From: Rhodosorus marinus CCMP1338
Lineage: Eukaryota; Plantae; Rhodophyta
Direction: 5' to 3'
Assembly (NCBI GenBank): GCA_029953675.1
Contig: JAMWBK010000011.1
Coordinates: forward strand, 806,001 to 870,000
Length of the DNA stretch: 64,000 nucleotides
Position numbers and translations under genes: made by a program. Each line of letters opens with the position of its first letter. Position 1 is the first letter of the stretch. A model generated the notes under the pieces. That model had not been told where the DNA came from, searched no databases, and was given only the letters and a program-made list of their open reading frames with translations. Positions 187 to 63,196 of this stretch are shown here, one piece after another.

Positions 187-1557
187 ATGGAGTCACTTGG
201 AACTCAGTTTTCCAGCCTGTCTCCTCATTTGGAATGGGACTCGATACCTATGAACTGGTCGCTTTTCAGGTTGCATAGGCAGGCCGTACCGTATCCCGGA
301 GATTGGTCAGTGATGCTCATTGATATGCGGTTTAAGATACCCGAGTTGACGGAGTCTGTTATTAACGCATCCGTTAGCGCTCGAATGATCTCGTTGTTCA
401 CCCAGCCATCGCTGATGATGACTGAGGTGCATTGCGACTCTTACATTCTCGGATCCGGATGGACTTTTCTTGGAGGTCTTCCGGACCTGGACGGGCTATC
501 GAACGGCAGGCACGCTGGTATGCAAAGGATTCGCTTTTTGTCATGGCTTGAGAACAACAAGGCGAGGGCGCTTCTATCCAGTGAGGTTCGCCCAGGACTA
601 ATCGTCTTCGCGAAGATCTCGGAACTGGATGGCAGATACAACCAAACTACGTGGGGCCTTGTGGGCCAGGATGATGAGACAGTCCTTCACACTCATGTGC
701 ATCTAGAGAGGCGGACATGCGATGTGTGCCGCACCATTGGGAAGCCCTGCGACGATAGGATTTGCAAGTTCGAACAGTCCTTCCACGAGATGAGAGATGC
801 CAGGATATCGCTTCTTGAGCAGATGACAACACGATCTGTGAATATGCAGTATACGATGGCGTGGTTGGCTGGCTCTTTTACAATCCCGTGTGGGCCGCTG
901 GAGCCAATGACCGTCGATACGTCGTGCTATATATCGGGGTCGAACTTTGACAGGGCACTGCTTGCAGTCTTGCAGAGTGAGGTCTCCAGCGTACACCCGC
1001 CTCGATCATCGTTCCGATTCGTGAAGCTGGTCAAGGATGAGGTGGATGGACTCCTTGACACCGAAGTATATTTTTCAGCTGCAGAAGATCAATTCCTTAC
1101 GTTTCCAGCGGATTGTGCGTCTTCCTCGGGAGAAGGTTCAGGGCACAAGCAAGTGTCCACGTCGGCGTCAGAACCATTGGAGCCCAGGTCGACGGCGAAG
1201 AAACACGTGTGCGACGATTGTGGGGCCTCGTATGGGAGAGCCTACCACCTGAAACGGCACTGGACGGTGGTACACCAGAAGAGGAGGGACTACTTGTGCT
1301 CGGCTTGTGACAGGACCTTTACACAGAGTGGGCACCTGAATGAACACGTTCGAGTGGCGCACCGTACGGAGAACCTCTTCCAGTGTTCAAGGTGCGACAA
1401 GAGTTTTGGTACCAGCTCCAAGCTCACAAGGCACACACTTACTGTTCATGAGAACCGTCGTAGATTCGAATGCGACGTATGCATGAAAAGATACAAGGAG
1501 AAGTCGTACTTAAAACAGCATTTGCGCTCTCAACATGGTGTTCAAATGGAAGCGTGA
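187..1557 (+). CDS. Z1: uncharacterised N-terminal domain + 4x C2H2 zinc finger protein, 456 aa
   Basis: Intronless ATG ORF. Four C-x2-C-x12-H-x4-H fingers at the C-terminus (CDDC, CSAC, CSRC, CDVC). N-domain motifs WDSIPMNW, LGSGW, EVRPG, RRTCDVC, HPPRSSFR are shared with the other paralogues. Confidence 0.95.
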   Translation: MESLGTQFSSLSPHLEWDSIPMNWSLFRLHRQAVPYPGDWSVMLIDMRFKIPELTESVINASVSARMISLFTQPSLMMTEVHCDSYILGSGWTFLGGLPDLDGLSNGRHAGMQRIRFLSWLENNKARALLSSEVRPGLIVFAKISELDGRYNQTTWGLVGQDDETVLHTHVHLERRTCDVCRTIGKPCDDRICKFEQSFHEMRDARISLLEQMTTRSVNMQYTMAWLAGSFTIPCGPLEPMTVDTSCYISGSNFDRALLAVLQSEVSSVHPPRSSFRFVKLVKDEVDGLLDTEVYFSAAEDQFLTFPADCASSSGEGSGHKQVSTSASEPLEPRSTAKKHVCDDCGASYGRAYHLKRHWTVVHQKRRDYLCSACDRTFTQSGHLNEHVRVAHRTENLFQCSRCDKSFGTSSKLTRHTLTVHENRRRFECDVCMKRYKEKSYLKQHLRSQHGVQMEA

Positions 1558-1630
1558 CCGTGGCAGTGCATGTTTGGTTTCTCTTTTTCCTTTTGTTCCT
1601 TGTGTTAAGAGCTTAGATAGAACAGGCGAG

Positions 1631-1945
1631 GAGGAATCTATTTATCAACTGATGGACTGGTAAAAGCTAAGGGCAATTATCTCGCTGTAGCTGCATCGTT
1701 AGACCGACGAGGAATCTATTTATCAACTGATGGACTGGTAAAAGCTAAGGGCAATTATCTCGCTGTAGCTGCATCGTTAGACCGACGAGGAATCTATTTA
1801 TCAACTGAAATAAAGGACTGGTAAAACCTAAGGACAATTGTCTCGCTGTACCTGCATCGTTAGACCGACGAGGAATCTATTTATCAACTCATGGACTGGT
1901 AAAAGCGAAGCACAATTATCTCGCTGTAGCTGCATCGTTAGACCG
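1631..1945. repeat. Minisatellite, 4 copies of a 78-bp unit
   Basis: Unit gaggaatctatttatcaactgatggactggtaaaagc...gcatcgttagaccgac starts at 1631, 1709, 1787 and 1870. Copy 3 has a 5-bp insertion. Confidence 0.95.
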
Positions 1946-8089: not shown

Positions 8090-9460
8090 ATGGATGGGCA
8101 ATCTGTCGGGAACGACGTGTACAGTCTGTGTGAATATCTCGAATGGGACTCCGTGCCGTTGAATTGGATTCTGTTCCGGTTACATAGACAGGAGGTTCCG
8201 GAGCCGCAGAGCCTGATGGCAATGCTGCTGAACATGAAGATAAGAATACCAGAAGCAACCAAAGCAGTAATTGGCTCCTCGGAAGTTGCGAGTATGGTGT
8301 CCGTTCTGAACCAACCGTCGCTCATGATGTCCGAATTCCAAGGGCGAGACTTCACGTTGGGTTCCGGTTGGGCTTTCGTTGGAGGTCTTCCCGGGATGGA
8401 TGGAAACGTCCATGAGTTCGCGGGTCTCAAGCGAATTCGGTTCTTGTCCTGTTTTAGGGAGAGAAAGGGCGTGACCCTACTTTCCTGCGAGGTGCGTCCC
8501 GGCCTGATAACCTTCGTGAAAGTCGCAGAAGTGAGCGGAAGGTGCAATTTCAGCCAGTGGGGATTCATTGACAAACTGAGCGAACTGATCCTGCACACGC
8601 AGAGTCATATCGATACCCGTGCCTGCGACATGTGTGTTCTCGCCGGAGTAACATGCGATCCAACTAGCTGCCCCAGCGGGCAAACGTTTGACGATCTCCG
8701 TGACCGGAGACTAGCGCTCTTCCAAGAAGAAAATCGGCCCGGTTTTTATATGCACTATACAAAGGCGTGGTTATCAGGGACTTACACAATTCCTGTTGGA
8801 CCGTTGGAGCCCCTAACCTCAAACACCACTGTCTATTTTTCGGGCCAGAACTTTGATCTTGCGTTGCTTTCCGTGCTGCAGTTCGAAGTCGAAGGCGTTA
8901 ACCCCCCCCGGTCTTCGTTCCGGTTCGTGAAAAGTGAGATTGACGACATGCAGGATCAGGATACCTTGGGCTTGGAAGAGCTCACGTCGTCGGAGACCAC
9001 ATTGGCTAAGTCAGGCGTCGTTGTAGTGTCGGCGGGGGAAAGCACGGACGCCGAGACGAAAATCTCCGGCAGGCGAAAAAAAGAGAGCAGATGTGAGACG
9101 TGTGGTCTGGCGTTTTCCAGAGCGCATAATCTCAAACGACACAGGCTGCTCGTCCACCAAAAGCGAAGGGATTTCATCTGCGAATACTGCCAAAGGACTT
9201 TTACGCAGAACGGTCATCTCAAGGAGCACATCAAAGTGAACCATGTAGGGACCAACCTTTTGAATTGTACAGCATGCGGTAAGGGTTTTGGGGCAAGGTC
9301 GAAGCTGCAACGCCATATTCTCACCGTTCATGAGAATCGAAGGAGCTACAAGTGTGACGTATGTCAGAAGAAGTACAAGGAGAAGTCATACCTCAAACGA
9401 CATATGCAGAAACAGCACGGTGTTGAGCTGGAAGAGGTTGCCGCACTGATTGTTTCGTGA
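8090..9460 (+). CDS. Z3: N-domain + 4x C2H2 zinc finger protein, 456 aa
   Basis: ATG ORF with WDSVPLNW, LGSGW, EVRPG, RACDMC, PPRSSFR and four fingers. Confidence 0.95.
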   Translation: MDGQSVGNDVYSLCEYLEWDSVPLNWILFRLHRQEVPEPQSLMAMLLNMKIRIPEATKAVIGSSEVASMVSVLNQPSLMMSEFQGRDFTLGSGWAFVGGLPGMDGNVHEFAGLKRIRFLSCFRERKGVTLLSCEVRPGLITFVKVAEVSGRCNFSQWGFIDKLSELILHTQSHIDTRACDMCVLAGVTCDPTSCPSGQTFDDLRDRRLALFQEENRPGFYMHYTKAWLSGTYTIPVGPLEPLTSNTTVYFSGQNFDLALLSVLQFEVEGVNPPRSSFRFVKSEIDDMQDQDTLGLEELTSSETTLAKSGVVVVSAGESTDAETKISGRRKKESRCETCGLAFSRAHNLKRHRLLVHQKRRDFICEYCQRTFTQNGHLKEHIKVNHVGTNLLNCTACGKGFGARSKLQRHILTVHENRRSYKCDVCQKKYKEKSYLKRHMQKQHGVELEEVAALIVS

Positions 9461-11943: not shown

Positions 11944-13344
11944 ATGGGTGACCTCGTTCGGAGGATGGACTTACTGGTGGGGGCTCATGTTTCTTCGCTT
12001 TACCCGTATTTAACATGGGACTCTATGGCCGTGAACTGGATGCTTTTCCGACTGCACAGGCAGGCGGTACCGGATCCTGGGGACTTGTCAGCCTTACTAA
12101 TGGATGCGAAGTTCACCGTGCCGGAGGTGACTGGAATGGCGCTTGCGCAGTCGGAAATCTCGAAGTTCGTCACTTATTTAACGCAGCCAACGCTCATGAT
12201 AACTGAGGTCCAGGAGGAGAACTATACGCTAGGCTCAGGGTGGAGTTTTCTTGGGGGCCTTCCTGAACTAGCGGGGGGGACCAACAAGATGTACAAGGGC
12301 TTGAAAAGAGTGCGAACCATCGGATCCATTGAGAACGGCCTGGGCATAGCATTGTGTTCGACCGAAGTCCTACCTGGCCTAGTTGCGATCCTGAGGATGC
12401 AAGAAATCGACGGCGGACACAACCTCAGTATGTGGAGTGTTGTTGATCAAGAAACAGAAACCATAATTTTAACGCAGACCCAGATGGATAGGCGCAAGTG
12501 TGACAGGTGCATATTAATGGGAGATGTATGCGACCCATTGGTTTGCCAACATGAACAAACATTTGACGAAATCCGTACCCGTCGCCTAGCTCTGCACGAT
12601 CAACTGGACAAGCCAAGGTACAATCTGCAGTACCACAAGGAATGGTTCAATGGGAAGTACACCATGCCAGTTGGTCCGCTTCCACCGATAAGTATCGAAA
12701 CCTATTGTTACTCGTCGGGCCCAGCGTTCCAATATGCGCTGCTTTCAGTGCTTCAGAGCGAGATTGAAGAGGTTCAGCCCCCTCGATCCTCATTCAGATT
12801 CGTGAAACAAGAAACGGAAAAAATGCGTTACTTCTTGAATCTGGAGGTGGAAAACTTGAGCGACGAAGCGGGAAGCAGTGAAGACGGGTCATCGAGGGGT
12901 AGCGAGTCGACGGCATTGATACCCGCGAAGAAGAGACCTGGGCCTCCCCCAAAGCAATATCGATGTGAGACGTGCGGGATGAGCTTCGCCCGGGGGTACG
13001 ATATGAAACGGCACGTTATTGCCGTTCATCAGAAGATACGAGACTTCGAGTGTACTCATTGCATGAAAACGTTCACCCAGAGCGGACACCTGCATGAACA
13101 TATCCGAGTAGTCCACAGCGGGGTGAACGTGTTTCCTTGTTCAACGTGCAAGAAAAGATTCGGAGCGGAGTCGAAACTGTTGCGACATATCAGAACCGTA
13201 CATGAGAATGCACGCAACTTCACATGCAAGGTGTGCAAAAACACATATAAGGAGAAGGCATACCTGAAACGACATCTGCGCAATCAGCACGACGTGAGCA
13301 TGGATGACTTAGGCGACTCCGTAGAATCTTTGTCTACTAACTAG
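11944..13344 (+). CDS. Z4: N-domain + 4x C2H2 zinc finger protein, 466 aa
   Basis: ATG at 11944 (MGDLVRRMDLL) aligns with the paralogue starts. Four fingers and a PAKKRP basic patch. Confidence 0.95.
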   Translation: MGDLVRRMDLLVGAHVSSLYPYLTWDSMAVNWMLFRLHRQAVPDPGDLSALLMDAKFTVPEVTGMALAQSEISKFVTYLTQPTLMITEVQEENYTLGSGWSFLGGLPELAGGTNKMYKGLKRVRTIGSIENGLGIALCSTEVLPGLVAILRMQEIDGGHNLSMWSVVDQETETIILTQTQMDRRKCDRCILMGDVCDPLVCQHEQTFDEIRTRRLALHDQLDKPRYNLQYHKEWFNGKYTMPVGPLPPISIETYCYSSGPAFQYALLSVLQSEIEEVQPPRSSFRFVKQETEKMRYFLNLEVENLSDEAGSSEDGSSRGSESTALIPAKKRPGPPPKQYRCETCGMSFARGYDMKRHVIAVHQKIRDFECTHCMKTFTQSGHLHEHIRVVHSGVNVFPCSTCKKRFGAESKLLRHIRTVHENARNFTCKVCKNTYKEKAYLKRHLRNQHDVSMDDLGDSVESLSTN

Positions 13345-17509: not shown

Positions 17510-18910
17510 ATGGACGAACTCGTACGGAGGACGGACTTACTAGTGGGGGCTCACATTTCTTCGCTTTACAAGTATTTAACATGGGACTCTATTGCTGTGA
17601 ACTGGATACTGTTTCGACTGCACAGGCAGGCGGTGCCGTATCCTGGGGATTGGCCAAGTATAGTAATGGATGCAAAGTTCACCGTCCCGGAGGTGACTGG
17701 GATGGCGCTTGCGCAGTCGGAAATATCGAAGTTCGTCTCTTATTTAACGCAGCCAGTGCTCATGATGACTGAGATCCAGGAGGAAGATTATACATTAGGC
17801 TCAGGGTGGACTTTTCTTGGAGGCCTTCCTGAACTAACCGGCAAGACGAACAAGATGTACACGGGCTTGAAAAGAGTGCGAACCATCGGATCCGTTGAGA
17901 ACGGGCTGGGCATAATATTGTGTGCGACGGAAATCCTGCCGGGCCTGGTTGCGATCTTGAGGATCCAAGAACTCGACGGCCGTCATAACCTCAGCATGTG
18001 GAGTGTTGTTGATCAAGAAACACAAACCATAGTTTTAACGCAGACCCAGATTGATAGGCGCATGTGTGACCTGTGCGTATTAATGGGAGAAGTATGCGAC
18101 CCATTGGCGTGCAAACGGGAACAGACATTCGAAGAAGTCCGTACCCGTCGCCTAGCTCTGCACGAGAAACTGGACAAGCCAAGGTACACTCTGGGATACC
18201 ACAAGGAATGGTTCAATGGGAATTACACAATGCCAGTTGGTCCGCTTCCTCCGATGAGTATCGACATCCGTTGTTACTCGTCGGGCCCAGCGTACCGATA
18301 TGCGCTGCTTTCAGTGCTTCAGAGCGAGGTTGAGGAGGTTCAGCCCCCTCGTTCATCATTCAGATTCGTGAAACAAGAAACGGAAAAAATGCATTATTTC
18401 TTGAATCTGGAGGTAGAAAACTTGAGGGACGAAGTGGAAAGCAGTAAGGACGGGTCATCGAGGGGTAGCGAGTCGACGGCATTGATACCCGCGAAGAAGA
18501 GACCTGGTTCTCCCTCAAAGCAATATCGATGTGAGACGTGCGGGATGACCTTCGTCCGGGGGTACGATATGAAACGGCATGTAAATGCCGTTCATCAGAA
18601 GATACGAGACTTCAAGTGTACTCATTGCATGAAAACGTTCACCCAGAGCGGACACCTGCATGAACATATCCGAGTAGTCCACAGCGGGGTGAACGTGTTT
18701 CCTTGTTCAACGTGCAAGAAAAGATTCGGAGCGGAGTCGAAACTGTTGCGACATATCAGAACCGTACATGAGAATGCACGCAACTTCACATGCAAGGTGT
18801 GCAAAAACACATATAAGGAGAAGGCATACCTGAAACGACATCTGCGCAATCAGCACGACGTGAGCATGGATGACTTAGGCTACTCGGTAGAATCTTTGTC
18901 TACTAACTAG
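17510..18910 (+). CDS. Z5: N-domain + 4x C2H2 zinc finger protein, 466 aa; recent duplicate of Z4
   Basis: First in-frame ATG is at 17510 (MDELVRRTDLL). Colinear with Z4 at offset 5566 and identical over fingers 2-4. Confidence 0.95.
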   Translation: MDELVRRTDLLVGAHISSLYKYLTWDSIAVNWILFRLHRQAVPYPGDWPSIVMDAKFTVPEVTGMALAQSEISKFVSYLTQPVLMMTEIQEEDYTLGSGWTFLGGLPELTGKTNKMYTGLKRVRTIGSVENGLGIILCATEILPGLVAILRIQELDGRHNLSMWSVVDQETQTIVLTQTQIDRRMCDLCVLMGEVCDPLACKREQTFEEVRTRRLALHEKLDKPRYTLGYHKEWFNGNYTMPVGPLPPMSIDIRCYSSGPAYRYALLSVLQSEVEEVQPPRSSFRFVKQETEKMHYFLNLEVENLRDEVESSKDGSSRGSESTALIPAKKRPGSPSKQYRCETCGMTFVRGYDMKRHVNAVHQKIRDFKCTHCMKTFTQSGHLHEHIRVVHSGVNVFPCSTCKKRFGAESKLLRHIRTVHENARNFTCKVCKNTYKEKAYLKRHLRNQHDVSMDDLGYSVESLSTN

Positions 18911-20360: not shown

Positions 20361-20552
20361 TGGAGCGTTGTTGATCGGGAGACAACAACACGCTTCCCCC
20401 ACCGGACGATCACTGGCACGCATGCTATGGTAAGACCGCCGCTAGTGTGATATGTGCCCTTACCGGAGAGGTCTGCGACCCGTGCGCGCGTTGTGCCACA
20501 AGAAGCAGTCGTTCGACGAGAGCAGGTGGCGAGTTTTCGGGATTTCTTTCTT
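20361..20552 (+). pseudogene. Orphan, frameshifted fragment of the ZF-family N-domain (Cys-cluster segment)
   Basis: tggagcgttgttgatcgggagaca...gcccttaccggagaggtctgcgaccc...cagtcgttcgacgagc aligns to Z6 at about 21363-21530 (WSVVDRET...CDMCALTGDVCDP...QSFDE), with indels and a TAG. Confidence 0.8.
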
Positions 20553-20873
20553 CCTTTGTTTAGTTGGGGAGTCAATGGGATTGGGGGAGGTGAGGTTGGT
20601 TGGTAGTTGACGGAAGGGTTGGGAGGGAGGAGAAGGAAGAGGAGGGACTGGGTAGGTCTGTGGATTCGGTTTTGTGGATGACGGGGTGTCGGGTCAGCAG
20701 GGGAACGGCTTGTGGGATATTCTTTTTCGTTGGTCGTGGTATTCTGTTGTTTAGGGGAGTTTGGTTTCAGTCCGATAGGTGTGGATGAAGTGGTGTATGG
20801 ACGGGGTTTGACTGAATAGACAGGTGCATGTTTTGATGAGGAGAATCCGTCTAGGGGACGGCGGTGAATAAAT

Positions 20874-22322
20874 ATGGACGCTCTGGTGAAGCGAATGGAT
20901 GCTCTGGGCGGGTCGCACGTTTCTGGGCTATCGCATTACCTGGAATGGGATTCCATCGCTGCAAATTGGGTGCTGTTCCAGTTGCACAGGCAGGCCGTGC
21001 CGCATCCTGGTGACTGGTCTATTGGTCTTGTTGACTCACGATTTAACGTGCCTGAGGTTACAGCGATGGCGTTGGCCACTTCCGAGGTGGCGAGGATGGT
21101 GTCGGTGATTACACATCCTTTGCTGGTGATGACGGAGATGCAGGAGGAGCGATATTCTCTCGGCTCTGGGTGGGCGTTTCTTGGTGGCCTTCCCGAGCTG
21201 GATGGGATTAGCAACGGCAACTATTCCGGCCTGAAAAGAATCAGGCTGATGTCCTGGATTGAAAACTACCACGCTGTAGTGATTATCTCTTGCGAAGTAC
21301 GCCCCGGGATTGTGGCGGTGCTGAGAATCGCCGAGGTTGACGGAAGGCACAACCTTAACACGTGGAGTGTAGTTGATAGGGAGACACAGACGATCATCGG
21401 CACACAGACCATGTTTGACCGGCGCTCGTGCGACATGTGCGCCCTTACCGGAGACGTCTGCGACCCGCGCGTGTGCCATAACAAACAGTCGTTCGACGAG
21501 CTGCGAGCTTTTAGGATTTCTCTTCTCGATAAGATGGACAACCCCGTGTACAACATGCGATACACCATGTCGTGGCTGAGCGGGAAGTATGTTACAGCGG
21601 TTGGTCCTCTGCCTCCCATTTCGGTCGAGACGGCTTGTTACGCATCGGGGCCAGCGTTTGCATACGCGCTTCTCTCGGTGCTCCAGAGTGAAGTAGAGGG
21701 CGTTCACCCTCCTCGGTCAACCTTCCGTCTTGTTAAACACGCGAAAAATGAGATGGATTACTTCCTGGGTCTGGAAGACCAGCCCATGTCCTCGGCCAGT
21801 GAAGAGGTCAGCGACGAGGTCAGCGACGAGGTCAGCGACGAGAACAAGACAAGCGAGGAAGTCATTGCTCCGTTGAATGAGAAGAAGTCATCGAAGGATG
21901 TAAAGAAGCTGTTTGGTTCTGAAGCAAAGCGGCACCGATGCGGAACTTGTGGGATGTCGTTCAAGCGCGCATACGATATGAAGCGACACGTGATTGCAGT
22001 GCATCAGAAAATTAGAGACTTCAAGTGCTCGCACTGTGGTAGAGCCTTCACCCAGAGCGGACATTTGAACGAGCACGTGCGAGTGTCCCACACTGGGATA
22101 AACGTTTTCGTCTGTCCCGTTTGCAAGAAGACATTCGGAAACAAAGCTAAACGGGAGCGACACGTCAGAAACGTTCACGAGAACGAGAGCAACTTCAGAT
22201 GTGAAGTGTGTAAAAAGCTGTACAAGGATAAGACGTATCTCAAGCAACACTTGGCGACTCAGCACAACGTGACTGCGGATGCAGTCGGAGAGCTGTCAAA
22301 GATTTCGTTAACACAGTGTTAA
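20874..22322 (+). CDS. Z6: N-domain + 4x C2H2 zinc finger protein, 482 aa
   Basis: ATG ORF with the full motif set. The linker carries three perfect 12-bp EVSD repeats (21804-21839). Confidence 0.95.
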   Translation: MDALVKRMDALGGSHVSGLSHYLEWDSIAANWVLFQLHRQAVPHPGDWSIGLVDSRFNVPEVTAMALATSEVARMVSVITHPLLVMTEMQEERYSLGSGWAFLGGLPELDGISNGNYSGLKRIRLMSWIENYHAVVIISCEVRPGIVAVLRIAEVDGRHNLNTWSVVDRETQTIIGTQTMFDRRSCDMCALTGDVCDPRVCHNKQSFDELRAFRISLLDKMDNPVYNMRYTMSWLSGKYVTAVGPLPPISVETACYASGPAFAYALLSVLQSEVEGVHPPRSTFRLVKHAKNEMDYFLGLEDQPMSSASEEVSDEVSDEVSDENKTSEEVIAPLNEKKSSKDVKKLFGSEAKRHRCGTCGMSFKRAYDMKRHVIAVHQKIRDFKCSHCGRAFTQSGHLNEHVRVSHTGINVFVCPVCKKTFGNKAKRERHVRNVHENESNFRCEVCKKLYKDKTYLKQHLATQHNVTADAVGELSKISLTQC

Positions 22323-42627: not shown

Positions 42628-43998
42628 ATGCGGCATGTGGATTCGCTCCTCGGAGAGCATGTTTCTGGGCTTATGCCTCTCCTTCAATGGGACTCGCTTC
42701 CGTTAAGCTGGACTCTGTTCTTAAATCACAGTGAAACTGTGCGGCCTCCCCAAGATGGGTCGGTAATCCTCATGGACTCACGGTTCACGGTTCCGGAAGT
42801 CACGAGAAAGGCAATGGAAGCGTCCGAGATTGTGAGAATGGTCTCTGTCCTCACTCAACCTTTGCTTGTAATGATGGAGGTCCGCGAGAAAGACTATTTT
42901 CTCTTTTCTGGCTGGGCGTTTCTTGGAGGTCTTCCTGAATTCGAGGGGCGTAACAACGATGAGTATTCAGGAGTGAAAAGGATCAGACTGGTCACCACGC
43001 TCGAGAATGGCAAGGCTGTGGTGACTACGTCAGCCGAAGTACAACCCGGAATCGTTGCTCTATTGACCGTCTTGGAAATAGACGAGAGGCACAACTTGAG
43101 CGTTTGGAGTGTCGTTGATCAGGAAACACAAACTATCATCAAAATACAGGCGCAGGTCGATAGGCGTTCCTGTGATATGTGTTTGCTAACGGGCGACATC
43201 TGTGATCCCAGAATATGCAAAAACCATCAGTCGTTCGAACAGGTACGGGCTACTAGAGAATCCCACCTCGACAGTTTTGGAAACCTAGCTTGTACAGTCC
43301 ATTTCCTCGGGGATTGGCTGTCTGGAAAGTGGACAATGCCGGCGGGTCCGTTGATACCAATAACTATCGACGCGACAGCTAGATCATCTGGACCAGTACT
43401 CCAGTACGCGCTTGCTTCCGCCCTCCAAATCGAGATCGCCATCGTCCAACCCCCTCGTTCGTCGTACAGGCTCGTAAAGCATGAGAGGGATGCGGTGGAT
43501 TCGTTGCTTAACGTGGAAGACCTGAATAACGCTTCCGGGAGCAAAGCTGGTCCGGAAATTGAAGAATTATTTACCTTCCTGAGTCCATCAGATAGTATGA
43601 AGTCGGCCAAGAAGCGCTGCCAGATCTGTGGGACTACATTCAAGCGCGACTATGATATGAAACGGCATGTCGTCGCGGCTCATCAAAAGAGTCAAGACCT
43701 TCAGTGCACATATTGTGACCGAACGTTTAGGCACCGAGGACATCTGAACGAGCACATTCGGGTAGCGCATACTCGGGAAAATTTGTTCGTTTGTCAGATC
43801 TGCGGCAAGATGTTTGGAGCAGACTCAAAGCTGATGCGTCATGTCACGACCGTTCACGAGAATAGGCGCAATTTCACATGCGAAGTGTGCGGAAACTCGT
43901 ACAAGGAGAAAGCGTACCTGAAGAAGCACTTGCTGAAACAGCACAACGTGACTCTGGACGAGATAAGAGATAGGACGGCGAGCGATATATCAGGGTAG
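42628..43998 (+). CDS. Z13: N-domain + 4x C2H2 zinc finger protein, 456 aa from the first ATG
   Basis: The position homologous to the paralogue ATG is TTG (42616); the first ATG is at 42628. Full motif set and four fingers. Confidence 0.92.
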   Translation: MRHVDSLLGEHVSGLMPLLQWDSLPLSWTLFLNHSETVRPPQDGSVILMDSRFTVPEVTRKAMEASEIVRMVSVLTQPLLVMMEVREKDYFLFSGWAFLGGLPEFEGRNNDEYSGVKRIRLVTTLENGKAVVTTSAEVQPGIVALLTVLEIDERHNLSVWSVVDQETQTIIKIQAQVDRRSCDMCLLTGDICDPRICKNHQSFEQVRATRESHLDSFGNLACTVHFLGDWLSGKWTMPAGPLIPITIDATARSSGPVLQYALASALQIEIAIVQPPRSSYRLVKHERDAVDSLLNVEDLNNASGSKAGPEIEELFTFLSPSDSMKSAKKRCQICGTTFKRDYDMKRHVVAAHQKSQDLQCTYCDRTFRHRGHLNEHIRVAHTRENLFVCQICGKMFGADSKLMRHVTTVHENRRNFTCEVCGNSYKEKAYLKKHLLKQHNVTLDEIRDRTASDISG

Positions 43999-45973: not shown

Positions 45974-47371
45974 ATGGAGCCCCAGCAGGATCCATTGATG
46001 GGGAAGCACGTCTCAGTGCTAAGCAAGCATTTCCAGTGGGACTCGCTTCCGATGAACTGGATGATGTACCGCACTCATAAGCAGGCGGTGCCGCATCCTA
46101 GCAGCTGGTCGATGCTGCTGATGGACATGAAGTTTGGAATTCCGCCGATTACCGGAAAGGCGATGATGGCTTTGAAAGCAGCGTCCATGGTGTCAGTGAT
46201 CAATCAGCCGACGCTGATGATGACCGAGTTCGCGGAAGGGGACTACAATATTGGATCTGGGTGGGCCTTCTTGGGAGGTCTTCCGGACTTGAACGGAAGA
46301 CGTAACGAAAAATATGGAGGCCTGAAAAGGATTAGGTTCATTAATTGGCTGGAGGACTACAAAGCGGTGGTGATTATTTCAGCCGAGGTCCAGCCTGGAC
46401 TGATCGCTTTCATAAAGCTGTCCGAAGTGGACGGAAGGTTAAATTACGGTATCTGGGCGGTAGTGGACAAAGACAGTGAAAAAATTTTCTGCAGTCAGGC
46501 CCACTTGGATAGACGACCTTGCGACATGTGCCGGCTGACGGGCGAACTTTGCGATCCGAGGAGCTGCACCAACATTCAGTCACTTAGCAACGAGCGAGCT
46601 GTGAGAAGAGCGTTGCTGGAACAATCAGATCCCCCTGTTCTAAACATGGAGTACGCGATGGTGTGGCTCAGTGGAAACTGGATTGTCCCAGTTGGACCGC
46701 TTGAGCCGGTCACAATTGACATCGATTGTTATGCGTCTGGGTCGGTCTTTGAAGTTGCTCTTGTGGCAGTTCTACAAGCCGAGGTGGAGAGCGTCCACCC
46801 CCCACGTTCGTCCTATCGGACCGTCCACTGTGCCAGGAGTGAAATGGACTACTTTCTGGAGTTGGAGGACCTGTCAAGCGAGTTCGGGGGAATGGAAACC
46901 TCGTCAAGCGAGTTCAGGGGAATAGATACCTCGTCAAGCGAAGAGCCCCATATCAGCTCGTTGCCGTATGCCTCCTCTGGGGTAGACTCGAGGGAGGGCG
47001 TAGCTACGGCAGATGGTCACGTTTGCGACTTGTGCGGCACATCGTTCACTCGTGCATACGATGTTACAAGACATCGAAGAGTCGTCCACCAAAAGCGGAG
47101 GGACTTCCAATGCGAGCAGTGTGAGAAAACGTTCACTCAGAAAGGTCACCTGAATGAGCACATCAGAGTAGTCCACGAGCGAATGCATGTACATCCCTGT
47201 CCGATCTGCGACAAGCGCTTTGGTGCGAGCTCTAAACTGAAACGGCACATGGTGACAGTGCACGAAAATCGGCGCAGTTTCCAGTGCAATGTGTGCAAAA
47301 ACAACTACAAGGAGAAATCATATCTAAAACAGCACATGCGAGACGTACACGATGTGAAGATGGCCTCTTGA
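45974..47371 (+). CDS. Z14: N-domain + 4x C2H2 zinc finger protein, 465 aa
   Basis: First ATG is at 45974. Full motif set. 30-bp linker repeats at 46874-46942. Confidence 0.95.
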   Translation: MEPQQDPLMGKHVSVLSKHFQWDSLPMNWMMYRTHKQAVPHPSSWSMLLMDMKFGIPPITGKAMMALKAASMVSVINQPTLMMTEFAEGDYNIGSGWAFLGGLPDLNGRRNEKYGGLKRIRFINWLEDYKAVVIISAEVQPGLIAFIKLSEVDGRLNYGIWAVVDKDSEKIFCSQAHLDRRPCDMCRLTGELCDPRSCTNIQSLSNERAVRRALLEQSDPPVLNMEYAMVWLSGNWIVPVGPLEPVTIDIDCYASGSVFEVALVAVLQAEVESVHPPRSSYRTVHCARSEMDYFLELEDLSSEFGGMETSSSEFRGIDTSSSEEPHISSLPYASSGVDSREGVATADGHVCDLCGTSFTRAYDVTRHRRVVHQKRRDFQCEQCEKTFTQKGHLNEHIRVVHERMHVHPCPICDKRFGASSKLKRHMVTVHENRRSFQCNVCKNNYKEKSYLKQHMRDVHDVKMAS

Positions 47372-48072: not shown

Positions 48073-49419
48073 ATGGACTTTCAGGGGATGATAGGGACGC
48101 ATATCTCTCAGTTGACATCCTTTATGGAGTTTGAATCTGTTCCCTTGAACTGGCTTCTGTTTCGGACCAAACGGGAGACCGTCCCGCAGCCCCAACACCA
48201 TTTGGTGTCGATGCTGGATATGACCTCGGTGATTCCTCCAGAGACTGGAGTGGCGCTCACTGCTTCAAAGACCGCGCAGATGCTTTCGGTCCTTTCGATG
48301 CCTTCATTGCTAATGTGGGAAACGTGCAACAGGCAATTTTCGCTCGGCTCTGGTTGGGCATTCGTCGGTGGTGTTCCAGGTTCTGCAGGGCCCGGGGGAG
48401 GTAGAAGTTACAAGAAAATTCGGTTTATGAACTATATAACTATCAAAAAAACTGCAGTGTCAGTTCTGACTAGCGAGGTTTACCCAGGAGTCCTCGCTTT
48501 CTCAATGGTAGCCGAAATCGATGAGCGAAGCAATGAGAGCACATGGGGTTTGATTGATGCCAGGACCGAGGAGGTCCACTATATTAATACCCAATACGAC
48601 AGACGGTGCTGCGTACTTTGCTCGGTGAATGGTATGGACTGTATTCCAGAAACTTGTGCCAACCAGGAAAACTTTCTCAGTTTGCGGTCGCTGAGGACGT
48701 CCCTCGCTGAGGCCGACCGCTTTGTTGGACTGCAGTACATGATGACCTGGCTCCAGGGAACATGGACTATTCCGCTGGGTGATCTTGAGCCAATAATTGT
48801 GGATATGACGTACTACCCGTCTGGAGAACGATATAGCTCGGCCCTGGGGTTCGTTCTGCAAGAGGAAGTGGCGACTATCCACCCACCTCGGTCGTCCTAC
48901 AGACTTTGCAAGCTCGCTCAGGATCAGTGCGAGGAGTTTCTCGAGATCAAGGACCAGATGGATGCACAGGACGTGTTGGGTCCACCGAGCTCTAACGGCA
49001 GCCCGAGATTTTCGTCCGTAGGCTCGCTGCCAGATAGAGCTGAACCTGCCGTAGAAACCAGCTCCAAACATGGAGCCTGCGAATTCTGTGGGATGTCTTT
49101 CAAGAGGAAATATGACCTCAGGAGACACAGAGCGTCGGTCCACCTGAAGAGAAGGGACTTCAAATGCCAATACTGTGCAAAGACTTTCACCCAAAACGGT
49201 CACTTGCACGAACATGTTAGGTTGAACCACGAGACTGAAAGTACGTACCAGTGCCCGGAGTGTGACAAGAAATTCGGCGCCAAGTCGAAACTCGATCGGC
49301 ACGTCCGGACCGTCCACGATAATGTCCGTAACTTCCAATGTCATTTTTGCCAGAAGAAATACAAGGAAAGGTCCTACCTGAAGCACCATCTGCTCGCGCG
49401 ACATGGGGTGTCAGTGTAG
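48073..49419 (+). CDS. Z15: N-domain + 4x C2H2 zinc finger protein, 448 aa
   Basis: First ATG is at 48073. Motifs LGSGW, EVYPG, RRCCVLC, WLQGTW, HPPRSSYR. Four fingers. Confidence 0.95.
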   Translation: MDFQGMIGTHISQLTSFMEFESVPLNWLLFRTKRETVPQPQHHLVSMLDMTSVIPPETGVALTASKTAQMLSVLSMPSLLMWETCNRQFSLGSGWAFVGGVPGSAGPGGGRSYKKIRFMNYITIKKTAVSVLTSEVYPGVLAFSMVAEIDERSNESTWGLIDARTEEVHYINTQYDRRCCVLCSVNGMDCIPETCANQENFLSLRSLRTSLAEADRFVGLQYMMTWLQGTWTIPLGDLEPIIVDMTYYPSGERYSSALGFVLQEEVATIHPPRSSYRLCKLAQDQCEEFLEIKDQMDAQDVLGPPSSNGSPRFSSVGSLPDRAEPAVETSSKHGACEFCGMSFKRKYDLRRHRASVHLKRRDFKCQYCAKTFTQNGHLHEHVRLNHETESTYQCPECDKKFGAKSKLDRHVRTVHDNVRNFQCHFCQKKYKERSYLKHHLLARHGVSV

Positions 49420-51928: not shown

Positions 51929-53287
51929 ATGGATATTCTACCGTTTATGAGGTTGGTGGACGCCTTCCCGAACATGGAGTATGGGTCCGGTTCAGAGCGG
52001 TGGATGTTGCATGAAGAGGAGAGGAGAGGTGTTCCGAGGAGGAAGGAGAATAGTGCCCTAGTATTGATGGATATGCATATGGCTATTCCAGAGGAAATCC
52101 GCGCGGAAATGGGCACGAACTTATTTGATGTGATGTCGAGTCCGGGGCTTTTCATGGATGAGGCTTATACGGAAACGTTTACTGTCGGTACGGCGTGGAT
52201 GCTGGCATGCGGTGTTCCCGGAACGGAGAGGTTCAATCCTAACGTACTCCATCCGGTTGTTCAGGTGAGATATATGACCACCCTCAGCGAGGATCGCGCG
52301 AGTACTCTGATGACTTGCAAAATCTCCGAGGACATGGTGATATTCGCGCAAATAGAGGAGATGACCGGACGCTATAATCGTGTCAACCATGGGATTATCG
52401 AGCCGCGGGGAAGGACGGTGCAAATTGTTGCGCAGAGTTACGATGAAAAGTATTGTGATAAATGCACCGTGCTTTCGAGCAAATGCGAGTGCCAAGACCA
52501 GCAAAATATGATGCAGTTTAGCAATCGTGCGAAGGGAAGAAGGGCGCAATTTAGCTCGTCACCTCTTGAGAGGGGAAGCTTTCTCGGCAATGCCTACCTC
52601 AAGTCCTGGTTGGAAGGGTCCTGGACTGTGAGCGCGGCGGGCTTGCCTCCGTTTAAATTGGAAATTAATATGCACGAAGAGGGGACACTAAGGTTCGATG
52701 GAGCGATGATTTACGTGTACCAAACGGAAATAGAGAAGCTTCACCATCCGAGATCCAATATTTTTCAGCTATGGGATGTGGACCCACTAACTTTGTTTGA
52801 GTCTGGTGAAAGCGACCATGGGACGTCCTCTGCGAGCGAAATTTTATCGCAATCTTCCTTACTCGACGATCTTGCCTCTCAGAATTCGAGCCTGGGGTCG
52901 TCCGGTGAAAGTTCTTTCGACAACGGGGAGCGGAAACCTTTCGAATGCAAGATCTGCGGCATGCACTTCCGACGGGAGTATGATGTGACGCGGCACATGA
53001 ACGGAGTACATATGAAAAAGAAGGACCACGTGTGCAAACTCTGCCCGAGACAATTCTCGCAGAGGGGACACCTGAACGAACACGTCCGGAAAGAGCACTT
53101 TGGAATTGGCTTCAGATGTGAGCGCTGTCCTCCGGACAGCGCAAAAGTATTCGGCTCCAGGTCAAAACTTAAGCGGCATATGGAGAACGTCCACCTCAAC
53201 ATTCGTCGGTACGCTTGTAATTCGTGTACAAAGCAGTACAAGGACGCGACAAACCTGCGTGACCACATGGCGAAAGCCCACCCATGA
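51929..53287 (+). CDS. Z16: divergent N-domain + 4x C2H2 zinc finger protein, 452 aa
   Basis: ATG ORF with degenerate family motifs (VGTAW, YCDKC-x6-CEC, WLEGSW, HHPRSNIF). Finger 3 has a 4-aa insertion. Confidence 0.92.
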   Translation: MDILPFMRLVDAFPNMEYGSGSERWMLHEEERRGVPRRKENSALVLMDMHMAIPEEIRAEMGTNLFDVMSSPGLFMDEAYTETFTVGTAWMLACGVPGTERFNPNVLHPVVQVRYMTTLSEDRASTLMTCKISEDMVIFAQIEEMTGRYNRVNHGIIEPRGRTVQIVAQSYDEKYCDKCTVLSSKCECQDQQNMMQFSNRAKGRRAQFSSSPLERGSFLGNAYLKSWLEGSWTVSAAGLPPFKLEINMHEEGTLRFDGAMIYVYQTEIEKLHHPRSNIFQLWDVDPLTLFESGESDHGTSSASEILSQSSLLDDLASQNSSLGSSGESSFDNGERKPFECKICGMHFRREYDVTRHMNGVHMKKKDHVCKLCPRQFSQRGHLNEHVRKEHFGIGFRCERCPPDSAKVFGSRSKLKRHMENVHLNIRRYACNSCTKQYKDATNLRDHMAKAHP

Positions 53288-55280: not shown

Positions 55281-56594
55281 ATGGAGTTTACGGATATGGT
55301 GCCTGTAGCTGATGAGCTTTTGAAGGACTGGATGTTGCACAAGAGCGAAGCGAGGGTTTTTGATTTCAAGAAAGCGACACCGATTATGGTTAGCGTGAGG
55401 GTGACTGTTCACGACGAAGTGATGAAGTCTCCGTTCTACGGGCTTTTGTCGTCGTTTGAGAGGCCCGTTTTCCTGCTCTCGATGATGTACAGTAAACAGG
55501 TTCGGATCGGGATGGGATGGACGTTTGATGACGCGGGGCCTTTGCTGGAGTACTCCACCGGGGAAGGAGTTTCTCACGACCGTCGCGACGTTTTGACGTA
55601 TCAGAGGTTCTGCATGTTCGAGTGGAACGGTGTCGCAAACTTGCTCTGTACGCCAATTGGCGGAGAAGCTCAGGGTCTACCATTTATTCACATCCTTGAG
55701 AAAGACGGAGCGACGAATTACTCGGAGGTCGGCATCCTCGACAATGACACGGGAAGCAAGATCTTCTCGATTAGAGAAACCTCTGTACGACCGTGTGTTT
55801 TCTGCTCCGCACGGGATGAAGCATGTGCGTGCTCTCATGAGATGACTCTCCGAAGCTTTGGTCCGAACATTCCGCGTAAAGGTGGATCAATTGCCGGCGG
55901 GTTTGGGTTTAACGACGAACCGTACGTACACACTGCAAAGAAGTGGCTTTCAGGACGATGGGGCTTTCACGCTAATGGGCACCCGGCTTTTTCTACGAAC
56001 GCTGTGGTGCTCTCCGGCGGAAATTTGTTTGATAAAGCGCGGAACTACATCTGCCAGCAGGAAGCGCAGCAGATCTGCGGTCCGTATCAGTTTCCGATTT
56101 TGCAGTTTGGAATGAACTCTGGCGCAGCTCACGCTGTGCTAGCGCGAGGAGAAGGCGTTAAGTTTGAAATCCTGAGTGATTCGATCTCGGAGCAGATGAG
56201 TAGCGGCTCCTCCAAAGCGTCCGAACCAAGATGGAAGTGCAGAATCTGCGACGCGACATTTTCAAGGGTGTACGATGTCAAAAGACACGAAGAAGGTGTT
56301 CACTCCTCGAGCCGAAGCTTTGCGTGTGCGCACTGCTCTCAAACGTTCAAGCAGATGGGACACCTCAACGAGCACCTAAAGTCCCAGCACTCTGAATCTG
56401 GTGGACATGTTTGTTCGCTGTGTGGCAAGAGGTTTGGCGTCGAGTCGAAGTTGACGAGGCACGTTCTTCTTGTGCACATGGACATCAGAAAATTTGAGTG
56501 CAAGTACTGCAACAAAACGTACAAGGAGAAACATATTATGATGAGACACATGAAAAAAAAGCATGAACAACCGCAACCGCTGATAAGGAACTAA
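55281..56594 (+). CDS. Z17: subfamily-B N-domain + 4x C2H2 zinc finger protein, 437 aa
   Basis: First ATG is at 55281. Motifs RIGMGW, RPCVFC-x6-CAC, WLSGRW, FHANGHPAFS. Four fingers. Confidence 0.93.
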   Translation: MEFTDMVPVADELLKDWMLHKSEARVFDFKKATPIMVSVRVTVHDEVMKSPFYGLLSSFERPVFLLSMMYSKQVRIGMGWTFDDAGPLLEYSTGEGVSHDRRDVLTYQRFCMFEWNGVANLLCTPIGGEAQGLPFIHILEKDGATNYSEVGILDNDTGSKIFSIRETSVRPCVFCSARDEACACSHEMTLRSFGPNIPRKGGSIAGGFGFNDEPYVHTAKKWLSGRWGFHANGHPAFSTNAVVLSGGNLFDKARNYICQQEAQQICGPYQFPILQFGMNSGAAHAVLARGEGVKFEILSDSISEQMSSGSSKASEPRWKCRICDATFSRVYDVKRHEEGVHSSSRSFACAHCSQTFKQMGHLNEHLKSQHSESGGHVCSLCGKRFGVESKLTRHVLLVHMDIRKFECKYCNKTYKEKHIMMRHMKKKHEQPQPLIRN

Positions 56595-58371: not shown

Positions 58372-59844
58372 ATGGATTTTTCGGAGTTGTTCCCGACGAC
58401 TGACGAGGTGCTGAAGGGTTTTGTGCTTCATAAGAGCGATGTTAAAGTGTTCGACTTTAGCTCGGCATCGCCGATGATGTTCAGTATGAGCACGTTGATA
58501 CACGAGGAGGTGATGAAGTCGCCCTTCTATGGAATCTTGAATGCGATGATATCTCCGATATTCCTGCTCTCGATGAAGTACAGTGACGATGTGAGGATTG
58601 GAATGGGTTGGATTTTTGAAAAGCAAGGGCCGCTGCTGGGGTATTCTTCGGAAGGAGGGACTGTTCACGCGGGAAACGAGGCGGTGACATATGAGAGAAT
58701 CTGTATGCTAAAACACGACGGTAAACGACACTACATCGCCACACTCTCAGGTGGAGACGAGACTGGGCTGCCATTCACACACGTTGTCGAAGTGAATGCC
58801 CGGTCAAACTCTTGCGAGTTTGGAATGCTGGACAGAGAGACTGGAGTAAAGCTTTTCGGGATCAAGCAACTGTCGACCCGACCGTGTGTTATTTGTTACG
58901 CTAGGGGAGAAGCATGCGTTTGCACACAAGAAATGGTGTCGAGAGGATTTGAACCGTTGCCATTGACGATTCAATCCGGAGACGGGCTCAGGAGTTTTGA
59001 CTTCAACGACGACGTGTTCCAACGTTCTTTTCGGCAGTGGATGGGTGGGAGGTGGGACTTCCACGTCAACCGACTTCCTGCGTTTTCTGTGCAGTCGGAT
59101 TTATTGTCGTCGGGGGAGGCATTTGAACGGGCCAAGACCTATTTGGTGGAGCAGGAGATACAGCAATCGATAAGGTTTCGTCCTCCTGTGCAGCGCTCGT
59201 CCATGGAGAGGGCGCTGGCTTCAATAGTGTCTTGGAACGAGAGGAAAGAATCCCGCCAGGCAATTGAGGAATCGTCTAATACCGGAGACGCGACTGATCC
59301 AAGCATAGCGACGGATCCAGAAGCATCGACTGACCAAGACGTCTCGACTGAGCCAAAGGCATCAAGAAACAGCAATGTACAGACTACTCTAGAGGCGGCT
59401 ACTGAACTTTCAGCTGAACTTGTCGATAGTCCTCGCATTGGATGTAAAAAATGCAGAGCTTCGTTCACCAGCGCCTGGGGCCTCAGAAGGCACGATGCTG
59501 GAGTGCATCAGAACACGAGAAGTTTTCCATGCGAGTTTTGTTCAAGGACCTTTAAACAGAGCGGGCACCTGAATGAGCATTTGAGAGCTTACCATTCTAA
59601 AGGTGGTGGTTATGAATGTGAGGAATGCGGAAAGCGGTTTGGTGTTAAGTCGAAACTGGACAGGCATATTATTGGAAAGCATACAGACATCAGGCTGTTC
59701 GCTTGCAAGATGTGTCACATGAAATACAAGGAAAAGCATCAGCTGGCCGTACACACCAGACGAAAGCACAGCAGTACTGAATCCGACAAAATGAGAGTTG
59801 AAGAGTGCGAACCAGAGATCACCTACAGTCAAACCGCTCGGTGA
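58372..59844 (+). CDS. Z18: subfamily-B N-domain + 4x C2H2 zinc finger protein, 490 aa
   Basis: ATG ORF with RIGMGW, RPCVIC-x6-CVC and FHVNRLPAFS. Linker has four 18-bp repeats (59290-59361). Four fingers. Confidence 0.93.
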   Translation: MDFSELFPTTDEVLKGFVLHKSDVKVFDFSSASPMMFSMSTLIHEEVMKSPFYGILNAMISPIFLLSMKYSDDVRIGMGWIFEKQGPLLGYSSEGGTVHAGNEAVTYERICMLKHDGKRHYIATLSGGDETGLPFTHVVEVNARSNSCEFGMLDRETGVKLFGIKQLSTRPCVICYARGEACVCTQEMVSRGFEPLPLTIQSGDGLRSFDFNDDVFQRSFRQWMGGRWDFHVNRLPAFSVQSDLLSSGEAFERAKTYLVEQEIQQSIRFRPPVQRSSMERALASIVSWNERKESRQAIEESSNTGDATDPSIATDPEASTDQDVSTEPKASRNSNVQTTLEAATELSAELVDSPRIGCKKCRASFTSAWGLRRHDAGVHQNTRSFPCEFCSRTFKQSGHLNEHLRAYHSKGGGYECEECGKRFGVKSKLDRHIIGKHTDIRLFACKMCHMKYKEKHQLAVHTRRKHSSTESDKMRVEECEPEITYSQTAR

Positions 59845-61915
59845 TATCTGGCTGGGCGCAAGGCAAACGACACTGTAGCAAAAAGCTTTCGTTCAGCAGA
59901 TAACTGTAGGGAATGCCTATCGAGCTGCAACGAATTTGCTCGGAAGTCGGTCGATCTCGGATCGATCGTGTCCAGGCGGGGGAACGCGGTTGAGGGGCAA
60001 GCGGTTGTCAAAAAAATTTGCCAGCGCGTCAAACCCAAAAACACTCGAAGCGAGCCTCTGACTAGGCACACTCGACTCTCGGATAATAATGTCGGCCTGG
60101 CTCCGTGCAACGAATGTCTTCAAGTTCTAAAGCCTCTCCGATACATTGTGCTTGCGCCGACAATGCCGTTGAACGTGAGATTCTTACCCACTGGAGAAGA
60201 AAAAAAATCCCCTCGCGGTCAGGGGGAAGGAGGGGAAGGGAGGGAGCGGGAGCCCTGTACGACTATCCCAGCTCCAAAACCAATCAAACCAGAATGTACC
60301 ATCTTGGCTTCAGTCATCTCATCAATCAGGGACCAGCAAAGGTGACGCAATACGGACCATTCCTTCCCCCCCCCACCCCCAGCCCCGGAACTGAAAAGAA
60401 ACCTTTCTGGGCTCCCCAGTTATTTTGATTGTCAAAGACACGTGTCAATATATCAACGCGACCTAATCTTAAGGGGCAAACACACTGGAATATTTTAGTT
60501 ATTATTCTAATGTAATTAATATGTAATTAAAGTATTTTTAAATAGGAACTTCGGTCGATTCTTTTTTCTTCTTTCCTATTCGTTCTCGTGTTGGGATTCG
60601 ATGCCGTTTTGCGGGAAAAATTGGCTTTTTTAGGCTTTTGTTCCGGAATTCGGGATGCGGTGGTGGATTTCGTGGGAATTGGTTGTCATGGACGAGTCCG
60701 ATATATTTTTTTGGTTGAATATACTACTGCAAAACATTAGAAAAGTCGGGTACGTCTGGTTACAATTATTTCAAAAACATGAGTCCGAACAATAGTCTAA
60801 TATTCAATCAACGCTAGTCTAATAATCAATCATCTTACTTAGATATTGAATCATGATTACTTTCTCGTAAGGACAAACTGTCCACTGTGATGTATTGAAT
60901 TAGGATTATCTTTGGAATGCACAGACTTCATGCACATCTAATGGTTGTTTTTGAGAACGCTCTAGCAGGAAGGAGAATATGATTACGCAGATGCTTCCCT
61001 GTCTGCTGGTGAATCGGGACTTACCGGTGTCTTCGCGATGCTGCGGTGAAGCTGTCCTTACTATGCGCCGCCATGAGCTGAATATCTCACCTAGGTTGAT
61101 GGACAGCGCAGGAGTTGTCCGGTTTGCGTGAGTGCTTTGGGGGATTAACTTGATCACAGGACGCGTTTCCAATCCCTGCACAGTCTAGCCCTGTGGCGGA
61201 GTTCCAGCCGCCCTTATCCTTGCGTCCAGTGTAGTTCTCCCTTCTGCGGGTTGTTAGCCCTCGAATAAAAATTGGTTGGAGACTTGCGGACCAAGTCGGG
61301 CTGTGTTTTCACGTAGCTAGATCATTGACGGGGAAGAAGAAGATTGAAATGCAATCAATATTCATCGTTGATTGAATAGTATCGGACACCACTCGGTCGT
61401 TATCAGACTGTTATCCGATTAACCATCCGCTATTATTTTTTATTCAGGTCCAATAAGCTTGTATCGGACTCGAGCAAGAAGTAAATATTCTAAATTGTTA
61501 CGTAATTTCAGGTCTGATCTTTGTCGATTATTAAATCGGACTCTCTTTTTTATCGGACGGAAATCACAGCGGGACACTTGGTGCTAATGAGGGAATCCAT
61601 TGATGGAAACTGACACTGAAGGAGGCCACTTTGACATGTATTCTTGAAATGAGGAGAGACTTCATGGAGGGTCACATGATGTGAAGTATATTTGGTTTGA
61701 TTGGCGGTCCGTTTCTTCCTTTTGCGCGTGGGTGGGTTTGAGGGGGACCTGGAGTGCCTTGGGTTGATATACTTGGGTTGATATACCATGGTTGGTCCTC
61801 GTTCGGAGTGCAGTTGGCTTGAACGAAGGAGATGCGAGCGGGCGTTTTGAAGAATTGTGTAACTTTTTCTTTACTATACGTGAATCTGTGTTGTTTGTAG
61901 TATAGTTCTGGTTGG

Positions 61916-63196
61916 ATGTCGTTTTCAGAGCTGTTGCCTGTAGCTGACGAAGTCTTGAAGGACTTCATCCTTCACCGGAGCGATGTACAGTCGTTTGATT
62001 TTCGCTCCTCGGCGCCGTTAATGTTCGAGGTGAGCGTGGAGGTGCATGAGGAGGTGATGAAGTCGCCGTTTTATGGGTTCCTTGAGGCCCTGTCAAAGCC
62101 CGTGTTCACGCTCTCGACCAGCTACAATGACGACGTTAGAGTTGGAATGGGCTGGGTTTTTGAGACCCATGACCTGCTTTTGGATTATCCCAGAGGAGGA
62201 GGAGGAGTTCACGAGTTTCACGACTTGGTAAGCTATCAAAGGAGTTGTGTCTTTAAGCACAACGGCAAGTCTCAAGTGCTCTGCACGTTGCCCGCTGCGG
62301 ACGTCTCTGGACGGTTTCACCCGTTCTTTCATATTGTAGAGAACGACCGACGGTCGAATTACCAGGAGATTGGAATGCTTGACCGCGTGAGTGGAAACAA
62401 ACTCTTCTCGATCAAGCAGCTAGCGACACGACCTTGTGAGCTATGTACATTGCGCGGCGAGCCGTGCCTTTGCTCGAACGAGATGGTGTCAAGGGGCTTT
62501 CTTCCAGGGACGGATGAATCTAGTGACGGTTTGATAATGGCTCCGGATTTGGATGTTGCAGCTTGCCAGGTTGCAAGAAGGCGCTGGATGGCAGGAAGGT
62601 TTGGATTTCACGTGAACGGACTCCCTGCGTTTTCAGTGAATGCAAAGCTGCTGTCATCCGGAGAGATGCTTGAAAGGGCGCGCATCTTTCTGGTGCAGAA
62701 CCAAGCGCAAAAATCTACCAGCTTATGTCCAATTTCACATTCAATTCTACAGAGGGCCATAATGTCGGTGTTGGAGAAGAAGGAACAGGAAAACGCCGTT
62801 TCCGGTGACAAGGATGCGGAGCGGTTTAAGTGCGACCGGTGTGGTGCTTCATTCACCCGGATTTGGAGCCTTAGGAGACACGTCGCGGGTGTCCACGAGG
62901 AGAACCGCCAGTTTGCTTGCGAGTTGTGTTCCAGAACCTTCAAGCAGAGTGGACACTTACAGGAGCACCTGAGGACGAACCATTCGAGAAACGGCGGGCA
63001 CAGTTGTGAGATTTGCAGAAAGCGATTCGGAGTGAAGTCAAAATTAGAGCGCCACATGTATCAAAAGCACTCGAACATAAGGATGTATGAGTGCGAGCTG
63101 TGTCTGAAGAAATACAAGGACGCTCATGGTCTGAAAACCCATGTCAAACGAAAGCACAGCTCGACACATAAGACCACACGGGTTGAGACGTTCTGA
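61916..63196 (+). CDS. Z19: subfamily-B N-domain + 4x C2H2 zinc finger protein, 426 aa
   Basis: ATG ORF with RVGMGW, RPCELC-x6-CLC and FHVNGLPAFS. Shortest linker. Four fingers. Confidence 0.93.
   Translation: MSFSELLPVADEVLKDFILHRSDVQSFDFRSSAPLMFEVSVEVHEEVMKSPFYGFLEALSKPVFTLSTSYNDDVRVGMGWVFETHDLLLDYPRGGGGVHEFHDLVSYQRSCVFKHNGKSQVLCTLPAADVSGRFHPFFHIVENDRRSNYQEIGMLDRVSGNKLFSIKQLATRPCELCTLRGEPCLCSNEMVSRGFLPGTDESSDGLIMAPDLDVAACQVARRRWMAGRFGFHVNGLPAFSVNAKLLSSGEMLERARIFLVQNQAQKSTSLCPISHSILQRAIMSVLEKKEQENAVSGDKDAERFKCDRCGASFTRIWSLRRHVAGVHEENRQFACELCSRTFKQSGHLQEHLRTNHSRNGGHSCEICRKRFGVKSKLERHMYQKHSNIRMYECELCLKKYKDAHGLKTHVKRKHSSTHKTTRVETF

Follow-up and report, generated by a model that had tools for sequence, protein, structure and literature searches.

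The window analysed here, a 64,000-nucleotide stretch of the genome of the red alga Rhodosorus marinus CCMP1338 (assembly GCA_029953675.1, contig JAMWBK010000011.1, positions 806,001 to 870,000), is occupied by a tandem array of C2H2 zinc-finger genes. It contains 19 uninterrupted open reading frames (ORFs), all on the + strand, which encode proteins of 426-525 aa and occur one every 2-6 kb. Each protein consists of an N-terminal domain of ~290 aa (the N-domain), a disordered linker of 40-100 aa and four tandem C2H2 fingers (F1 to F4). The genes lie at the following positions of the window:

187..1557, + strand, array gene; exact match to GCA_029953675.1 JAMWBK010000011.1
3075..4484, + strand, array gene; orthologue P0018 present in a transcript contig
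8090..9460, + strand, array gene
11944..13344, + strand, array gene
17510..18910, + strand, array gene
20874..22322, + strand, array gene; transcript P0001 is 96%-identical
23547..24956, + strand, array gene
26055..27455, + strand, array gene
31791..33197, + strand, array gene
34234..35613, + strand, array gene
37271..38647, + strand, array gene
40045..41418, + strand, array gene
42628..43998, + strand, array gene
45974..47371, + strand, array gene
48073..49419, + strand, array gene
51929..53287, + strand, array gene
55281..56594, + strand, array gene
58372..59844, + strand, array gene
61916..63196, + strand, array gene

The 19 copies counted in the initial annotation are all present, but they are not the whole set. 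The array outruns the window on both sides: within the stretch of contig read (768.9-883.7 kb), it has at least 10 more same-strand members upstream, NDN08_007217 to 007226 (consecutive numbering, anchored on four named proteins), and 3 downstream. It comprises at least 32 same-strand genes across ~110 kb, with the window as its middle part; this size is a lower bound, as the upstream walk ends at 768.9 kb, still inside the array. All copies found so far in CCMP1338 sit in this single array, and the family accounts for ~0.4% of the R. marinus gene count (8,392 genes). Similarity between copies is greatest among close neighbours in the array (Mantel rho 0.48, p = 2e-4), as local tandem duplication would produce. 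Transcripts of many members are present in MMETSP assemblies.

The four fingers that close each of the 19 proteins have the form C-x2-C-x12-H-x4-H and score 56-65 bits per protein against PF00096 (Pfam zf-C2H2, cut-off 25.2), which identifies them as classical C2H2 fingers. Their top PDB sequence matches are DNA-bound poly-finger proteins, e.g. ZNF568, CTCF and Aart. H-x4-H spacing in every finger and the lack of TGEKP in any finger linker were borne out, whereas the linker length of 7 residues, initially given for all linkers, holds for 55 of 57. This length is compatible with tandem DNA wrapping, and the linkers are position-specific, reading QK(I/R)RDF after F1 and EN(R/E)RNF after F3. With helix positions indexed from the first zinc-binding His as +7, the initially reported table of helix residues was reproduced exactly. 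F2 carries Q at -1 in 18/19 copies and G at +2, H at +3 and E at +6 in 19/19; F3 carries S at +2 in 18/19 and K at +3 and R at +6 in 19/19; F1 carries R at +6 in 19/19 and D at +3 in 14/19; and F4 shows nine different residues at +6 among the 19 copies (helix sequences RxYDMKR, QSGHLxE, xxSKLxR and EKxYLKx). Mean entropy is 0.85 bits at the 16 contact positions (-1, +2, +3 and +6 of each finger) versus 1.96 bits at the remaining 76 non-structural positions of fingers and linkers (Mann-Whitney p = 3.8e-5), indicating that the residue pattern is more than chance. Invariance in at least 18 of 19 copies is seen at 8 of the 16 contact positions versus 2 of the 76 others. Some non-contact positions are equally frozen, such as the Gly at -2 of F3 (19/19); a hairpin Lys in F3 is kept in all 18 copies with a standard-length hairpin, and an Arg or Lys follows the first His of F2 in all 19. 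Of the array members read (31), 30 have QGHE in F2 and 29 have xSKR in F3, and this signature extends to distant relatives with few variants (QGHD, QSHD, RSHD and xSRR).

The outer fingers differ between copies. Among the 31 members, F1 takes the signatures RYDR, RYER, RYHR, EYER, RHNR, HSDR, SWGR, RWSR and SHDS, and F4 varies at -1, +2, +3 and +6. Between orthologues, 233 of 240 contact positions (97%) are identical in 15 pairs, versus 961 of 1139 other finger positions (p = 4e-9). The contacts that vary among paralogues (-1, +2 and +3 of F1; -1, +3 and +6 of F4) are kept in 89 of 90 cases, with a single change (p = 4e-6), indicating that the copy-specific contact residues are themselves constrained. 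Judged from these residues, the family was initially proposed to bind nearly the same site as one regulon. That proposal leaves F1 and F4 out of account, and their orthologue-kept differences suggest that the copies have the core site of F2-F3 in common but flanking triplets of their own, rather than a single regulon.

The N-domain had been described as radiating while the fingers stayed frozen, and this description fails. Mean pairwise identity among the 19 paralogues is 38.7% in the N-domain, 33.8% in the finger scaffold and 70.3% at the contact positions, and N-domain column entropy (1.80 bits) does not differ from that of non-contact finger positions (p = 0.14). The true contrast is between the contact residues and everything else, not between fingers and N-domain. 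Synonymous sites of paralogues are saturated in both domains; orthologous DNA was available as transcripts of five genes from another isolate of R. marinus (JGI sample 3300017118), with an unsaturated synonymous divergence (dS) of 0.25-0.36 across the five pairs. The comparison of N-domain and fingers by the ratio of nonsynonymous to synonymous divergence (dN/dS), which the initial annotation had proposed as a site-wise check, gave similar constraint at domain level: the N-domain has a concatenated Nei-Gojobori value of 0.205 and the fingers one of 0.190. With a value of 0.43, the linker between them is the one relaxed region, and neither positive nor relaxed selection is seen in the N-domain at domain level. 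The N-domain sites most variable among paralogues have an orthologue dN/dS of 0.30, indicating that the N-domain of each copy is maintained. The non-coding flanks of these orthologues share only 72-78% identity and contain many indels, so the coding constraint is real.

The N-domain is an uncharacterised domain to which no ligand-binding fold is assigned. Pfam returned no family for any of the 19 N-domains, even at E-values up to 5, and a sequence-profile search of the PDB gave no match. Its predicted fold is confident (predicted local distance difference test, pLDDT, 85-86) and consists of a beta-meander core with flanking helices. Foldseek found nothing at E up to 0.001 in the PDB (two models) or among viral structures. 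The weak matches are to up-and-down beta-barrels (lipocalins, avidin, NanoLuc, designed barrels and triphosphate-tunnel enzymes), hot-dog folds and one SRPBCC cyclase, with best E-values of 0.02-0.04, template-modelling (TM) scores that do not exceed 0.24 on the query and probabilities that are mostly 0.25 or lower (0.87 for one designed barrel). For the START/SRPBCC, lipocalin/calycin and nuclear-receptor ligand-binding folds, Foldseek gave no significant similarity in the PDB with two models, the lipocalin and SRPBCC probabilities being at most 0.25. Candidates picked by eye (SET/PR-domain, START/helix-grip, lipocalin and triphosphate-tunnel) were backed by no tool result. A motif C-x2-C-x6-C-x4-C (or ...C-x-C) is invariant in the 19 paralogues, its first three Cys are retained in 54 relatives, and this invariance marks the Cys4 cluster as a putative metal site. 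Conserved W, R, E and Cys4 residues sit on or beside the beta core.

A hidden Markov model (HMM) of the 19 N-domains matched 50 clusters among 1.84 billion representative proteins. Every full-length match that was fetched and read combines the N-domain with fingers, although some distant ones have only three; matches without fingers are fragments, except for a 375-aa sequence that ends inside F1. The named sources are Rhodosorus marinus and Purpureofilum apyrenoidigerum, both Stylonematophyceae, and the remaining matches come from MMETSP or Logan assemblies, one of which (SRR22824290) carries two family members in tandem. Among named sources, the family is so far confined to stylonematophycean red algae.

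Some further features of the locus were noted. All 19 window genes are intronless in their coding region, whereas the R. marinus genome (31 Mb, 8,392 genes, 24,821 introns) averages ~3 introns per gene (PMC10250338), a possible sign that the founder was a retrocopy. One spacer contains a foldback repeat, and a relic fragment occupies positions 20361-20553. In one downstream member (L004, 12847-14161), the annotated 386-aa model leaves out ~55 aa, among them the Cys4 cluster, and the reading frame in the genome is interrupted; this member is either a pseudogene or a mis-modelled intron. Past the three downstream members lie an unrelated 446-aa gene without a Pfam match and then a Fe/Mn superoxide dismutase gene. 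Scans for tRNA genes and Rfam families returned no feature in the window.

We consider it rather probable that the locus is an intronless tandem array of regulators that combine a fixed F2-F3 anchor, copy-specific F1 and F4 sites and a shared N-domain module. The proteins are most likely sequence-specific DNA-binding regulators, for which the conserved contacts, the 7-residue linkers and the PDB matches to ZNF568 and CTCF give indirect support. In each copy, F2 (Q-x-G-H-L-x-E) and F3 (x-x-S-K-L-x-R) would form an anchor that reads a common core half-site, and the F1 and F4 contacts, different between copies and kept within each, probably give every paralogue its own extended site. The N-domain may be a module common to all copies that acts as an effector, binds a partner or serves in sensing, and its Cys4 cluster may hold a metal; the domain has diverged between copies and is now maintained in each by purifying selection. 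The array presumably grew long ago by local tandem duplication, with rare gene conversion. The canonical recognition code predicts a site of about 5'-G(G/T)N-(C/N)GA-3' for the anchor, with GCG after it where F1 is of the RxxDxxR type; this is a lead and not a test. An engineered helix, QSGHLTE, was reportedly selected for 5'-CGA-3', which is likewise only a lead.

Several points weigh against this interpretation. DNA binding is inferred from family resemblance and position-specific conservation, and the canonical code may not apply to fingers with H-x4-H spacing and non-TGEKP linkers. Simple scans of the window and of 29 promoters revealed no common upstream motif and no enrichment of the code-derived site. 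GKNNGAGCG has 12 matches in the window (15.5 +/- 4.0 expected) and 5 in the 29 promoters of 600 bp (4.8 expected), which gives no support to the initially suggested auto-regulation through this motif in the cluster spacers. A de novo search of the same promoters yielded no shared 7-9-mers above shuffled controls. The shorter NGAGCG was matched 47 times where 33.5 were expected (p = 0.02, uncorrected, for one of six patterns) and was treated as noise. The DNA examined for target sites amounts to ~110 kb of the genome, and the dN/dS values are simple Nei-Gojobori counts from five gene pairs only.

Among the alternatives, the initially favoured one holds that all paralogues bind one DNA motif, with the N-domains acting as diversified input sensors or as competing activators and repressors, as in nuclear receptors. 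The near-identity of the F2 and F3 contacts throughout the array is in keeping with a single motif, and the large, folded N-domain, with its conserved W, R, E and Cys4 residues at the beta core, its paralogue-specific residues maintained in orthologues and its weak, non-significant matches mostly to small-molecule-binding beta-barrels, would be in keeping with many sensors. However, the F1 and F4 contacts vary between paralogues and are held within each, which points to different extended sites, and the derived motif is not enriched in the cluster. On the sensor side, divergence of the N-domain does not exceed that of the finger scaffold, and the best structural matches stay below significance. 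We regard this explanation as doubtful; of the two designs, one regulon with many sensors is the less likely, and a shared core with flanks particular to each copy the more likely. Equally doubtful is a reading in which the N-domain has a novel fold and its invariant Cys4, W, R and E residues sense a small molecule, a metal or the redox state, with at least 32 sensors converging on a shared core element with copy-specific flanks. Nothing shows a ligand pocket, for which the initial annotation had proposed a structural analysis, and the predicted fold has no significant structural neighbour. If true, such a battery of sensors would be a regulatory design undescribed in red algae.

More doubtful still is the view that the fingers read no DNA and that the frozen helix faces of F2 and F3 bind a common RNA or protein partner. 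The universal H-x4-H spacing, the lack of TGEKP, the scores of some fingers above the zf-C2H2_jaz and zf-met thresholds and the lack of an enriched DNA motif nearby would fit it, but PF00096 outscores the jaz and met models and conservation peaks exactly at the base-contact positions -1, +2, +3 and +6. In addition, the linkers have the canonical 7 residues, unlike the long linkers of fingers that bind double-stranded RNA, and the basic phosphate-contact positions are kept (the F3 hairpin Lys and the F2 Arg/Lys described above). The sameness of the fingers could also reflect concerted evolution, that is, gene conversion among tandem copies instead of functional selection; this explanation is largely refuted and very improbable. 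Just as improbable is an array of selfish or decaying DNA, made up of transposon-linked copies or pseudogenes without host function. The many intronless copies, the relic fragment, the foldback repeat and the downstream model lacking the Cys4 segment could be read in that way, but all 19 ORFs are intact, dN/dS is ~0.2 in both N-domain and fingers, transcripts are present, and scans of these ORFs and of eight spacer ORFs detected no transposase or reverse-transcriptase domain.

To our knowledge, almost no C2H2 protein of mesophilic red algae has a known site or function. The family joins its frozen two-finger anchor to a domain without relatives in Pfam, the PDB or viral structure sets, and makes a new protein domain available for characterisation. 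It also offers a compact natural experiment on how paralogues partition DNA targets by altering terminal fingers alone. In mesophilic red algae, C2H2 proteins are the largest class of transcription factors (PMC12567131, PMC12071319).

Comparison with known systems corrects the premise from which the analysis started, since a frozen DNA-binding domain is ordinary and the N-domain is as constrained as the fingers. The diversification called inverted in the initial annotation is so only relative to KRAB zinc-finger protein (KRAB-ZFP) clusters; transcription-factor families such as SP/KLF, plant IDD and the Q-type (QALGGH) proteins usually combine a frozen DNA-binding domain with partner domains that diverge. 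The tetrapod KRAB-ZFP clusters resemble the Rhodosorus array in being large tandem C2H2 clusters that grew by local duplication. However, the Rhodosorus genes have no KRAB (or SCAN/BTB) domain and four fingers instead of 10 or more, and, of their non-structural positions, the contacts vary least rather than most; selection on the genes is purifying. The animal SP/KLF factors likewise comprise many paralogues with C-terminal tandem C2H2 fingers, near-identical base contacts and differing N-terminal effector regions, and they act through shared core sites with partly distinct regulons. They have three H-x3-H fingers, TGEKP-type linkers, mostly disordered N-termini and dispersed genes. In the Rhodosorus family, the fingers number four and are of the H-x4-H type, the 290-aa N-domain is folded and bears Cys4, and at least 32 genes form a single tandem array; the PDB sequence comparison showed no relationship to SP/KLF beyond the generic C2H2 fold.

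The plant Q-type and IDD/BIRD families are also lineage-specific expansions within Archaeplastida, with dozens of paralogues that share a frozen recognition helix. QALGGH, which marks the Q-type (EPF/ZAT) proteins, is absent from the Rhodosorus helices; the BIRD-IDD third finger gives a weak, sub-threshold match (16 bits against a cut-off of 27), and the Rhodosorus N-domain is unrelated. Nuclear receptors and the plant HD-ZIP III/IV START factors share the combination of a conserved DNA-binding domain with a large, folded domain that diverges between paralogues, but the Rhodosorus N-domain has no recognised ligand-binding fold and sensing by it is a conjecture. The family belongs only to the generic C2H2 class and falls outside the KRAB-ZFP, SP/KLF and Q-type groups. 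What is new is the N-domain together with the scale and order of the array, and the locus represents a lineage-specific regulator family rather than a new principle.

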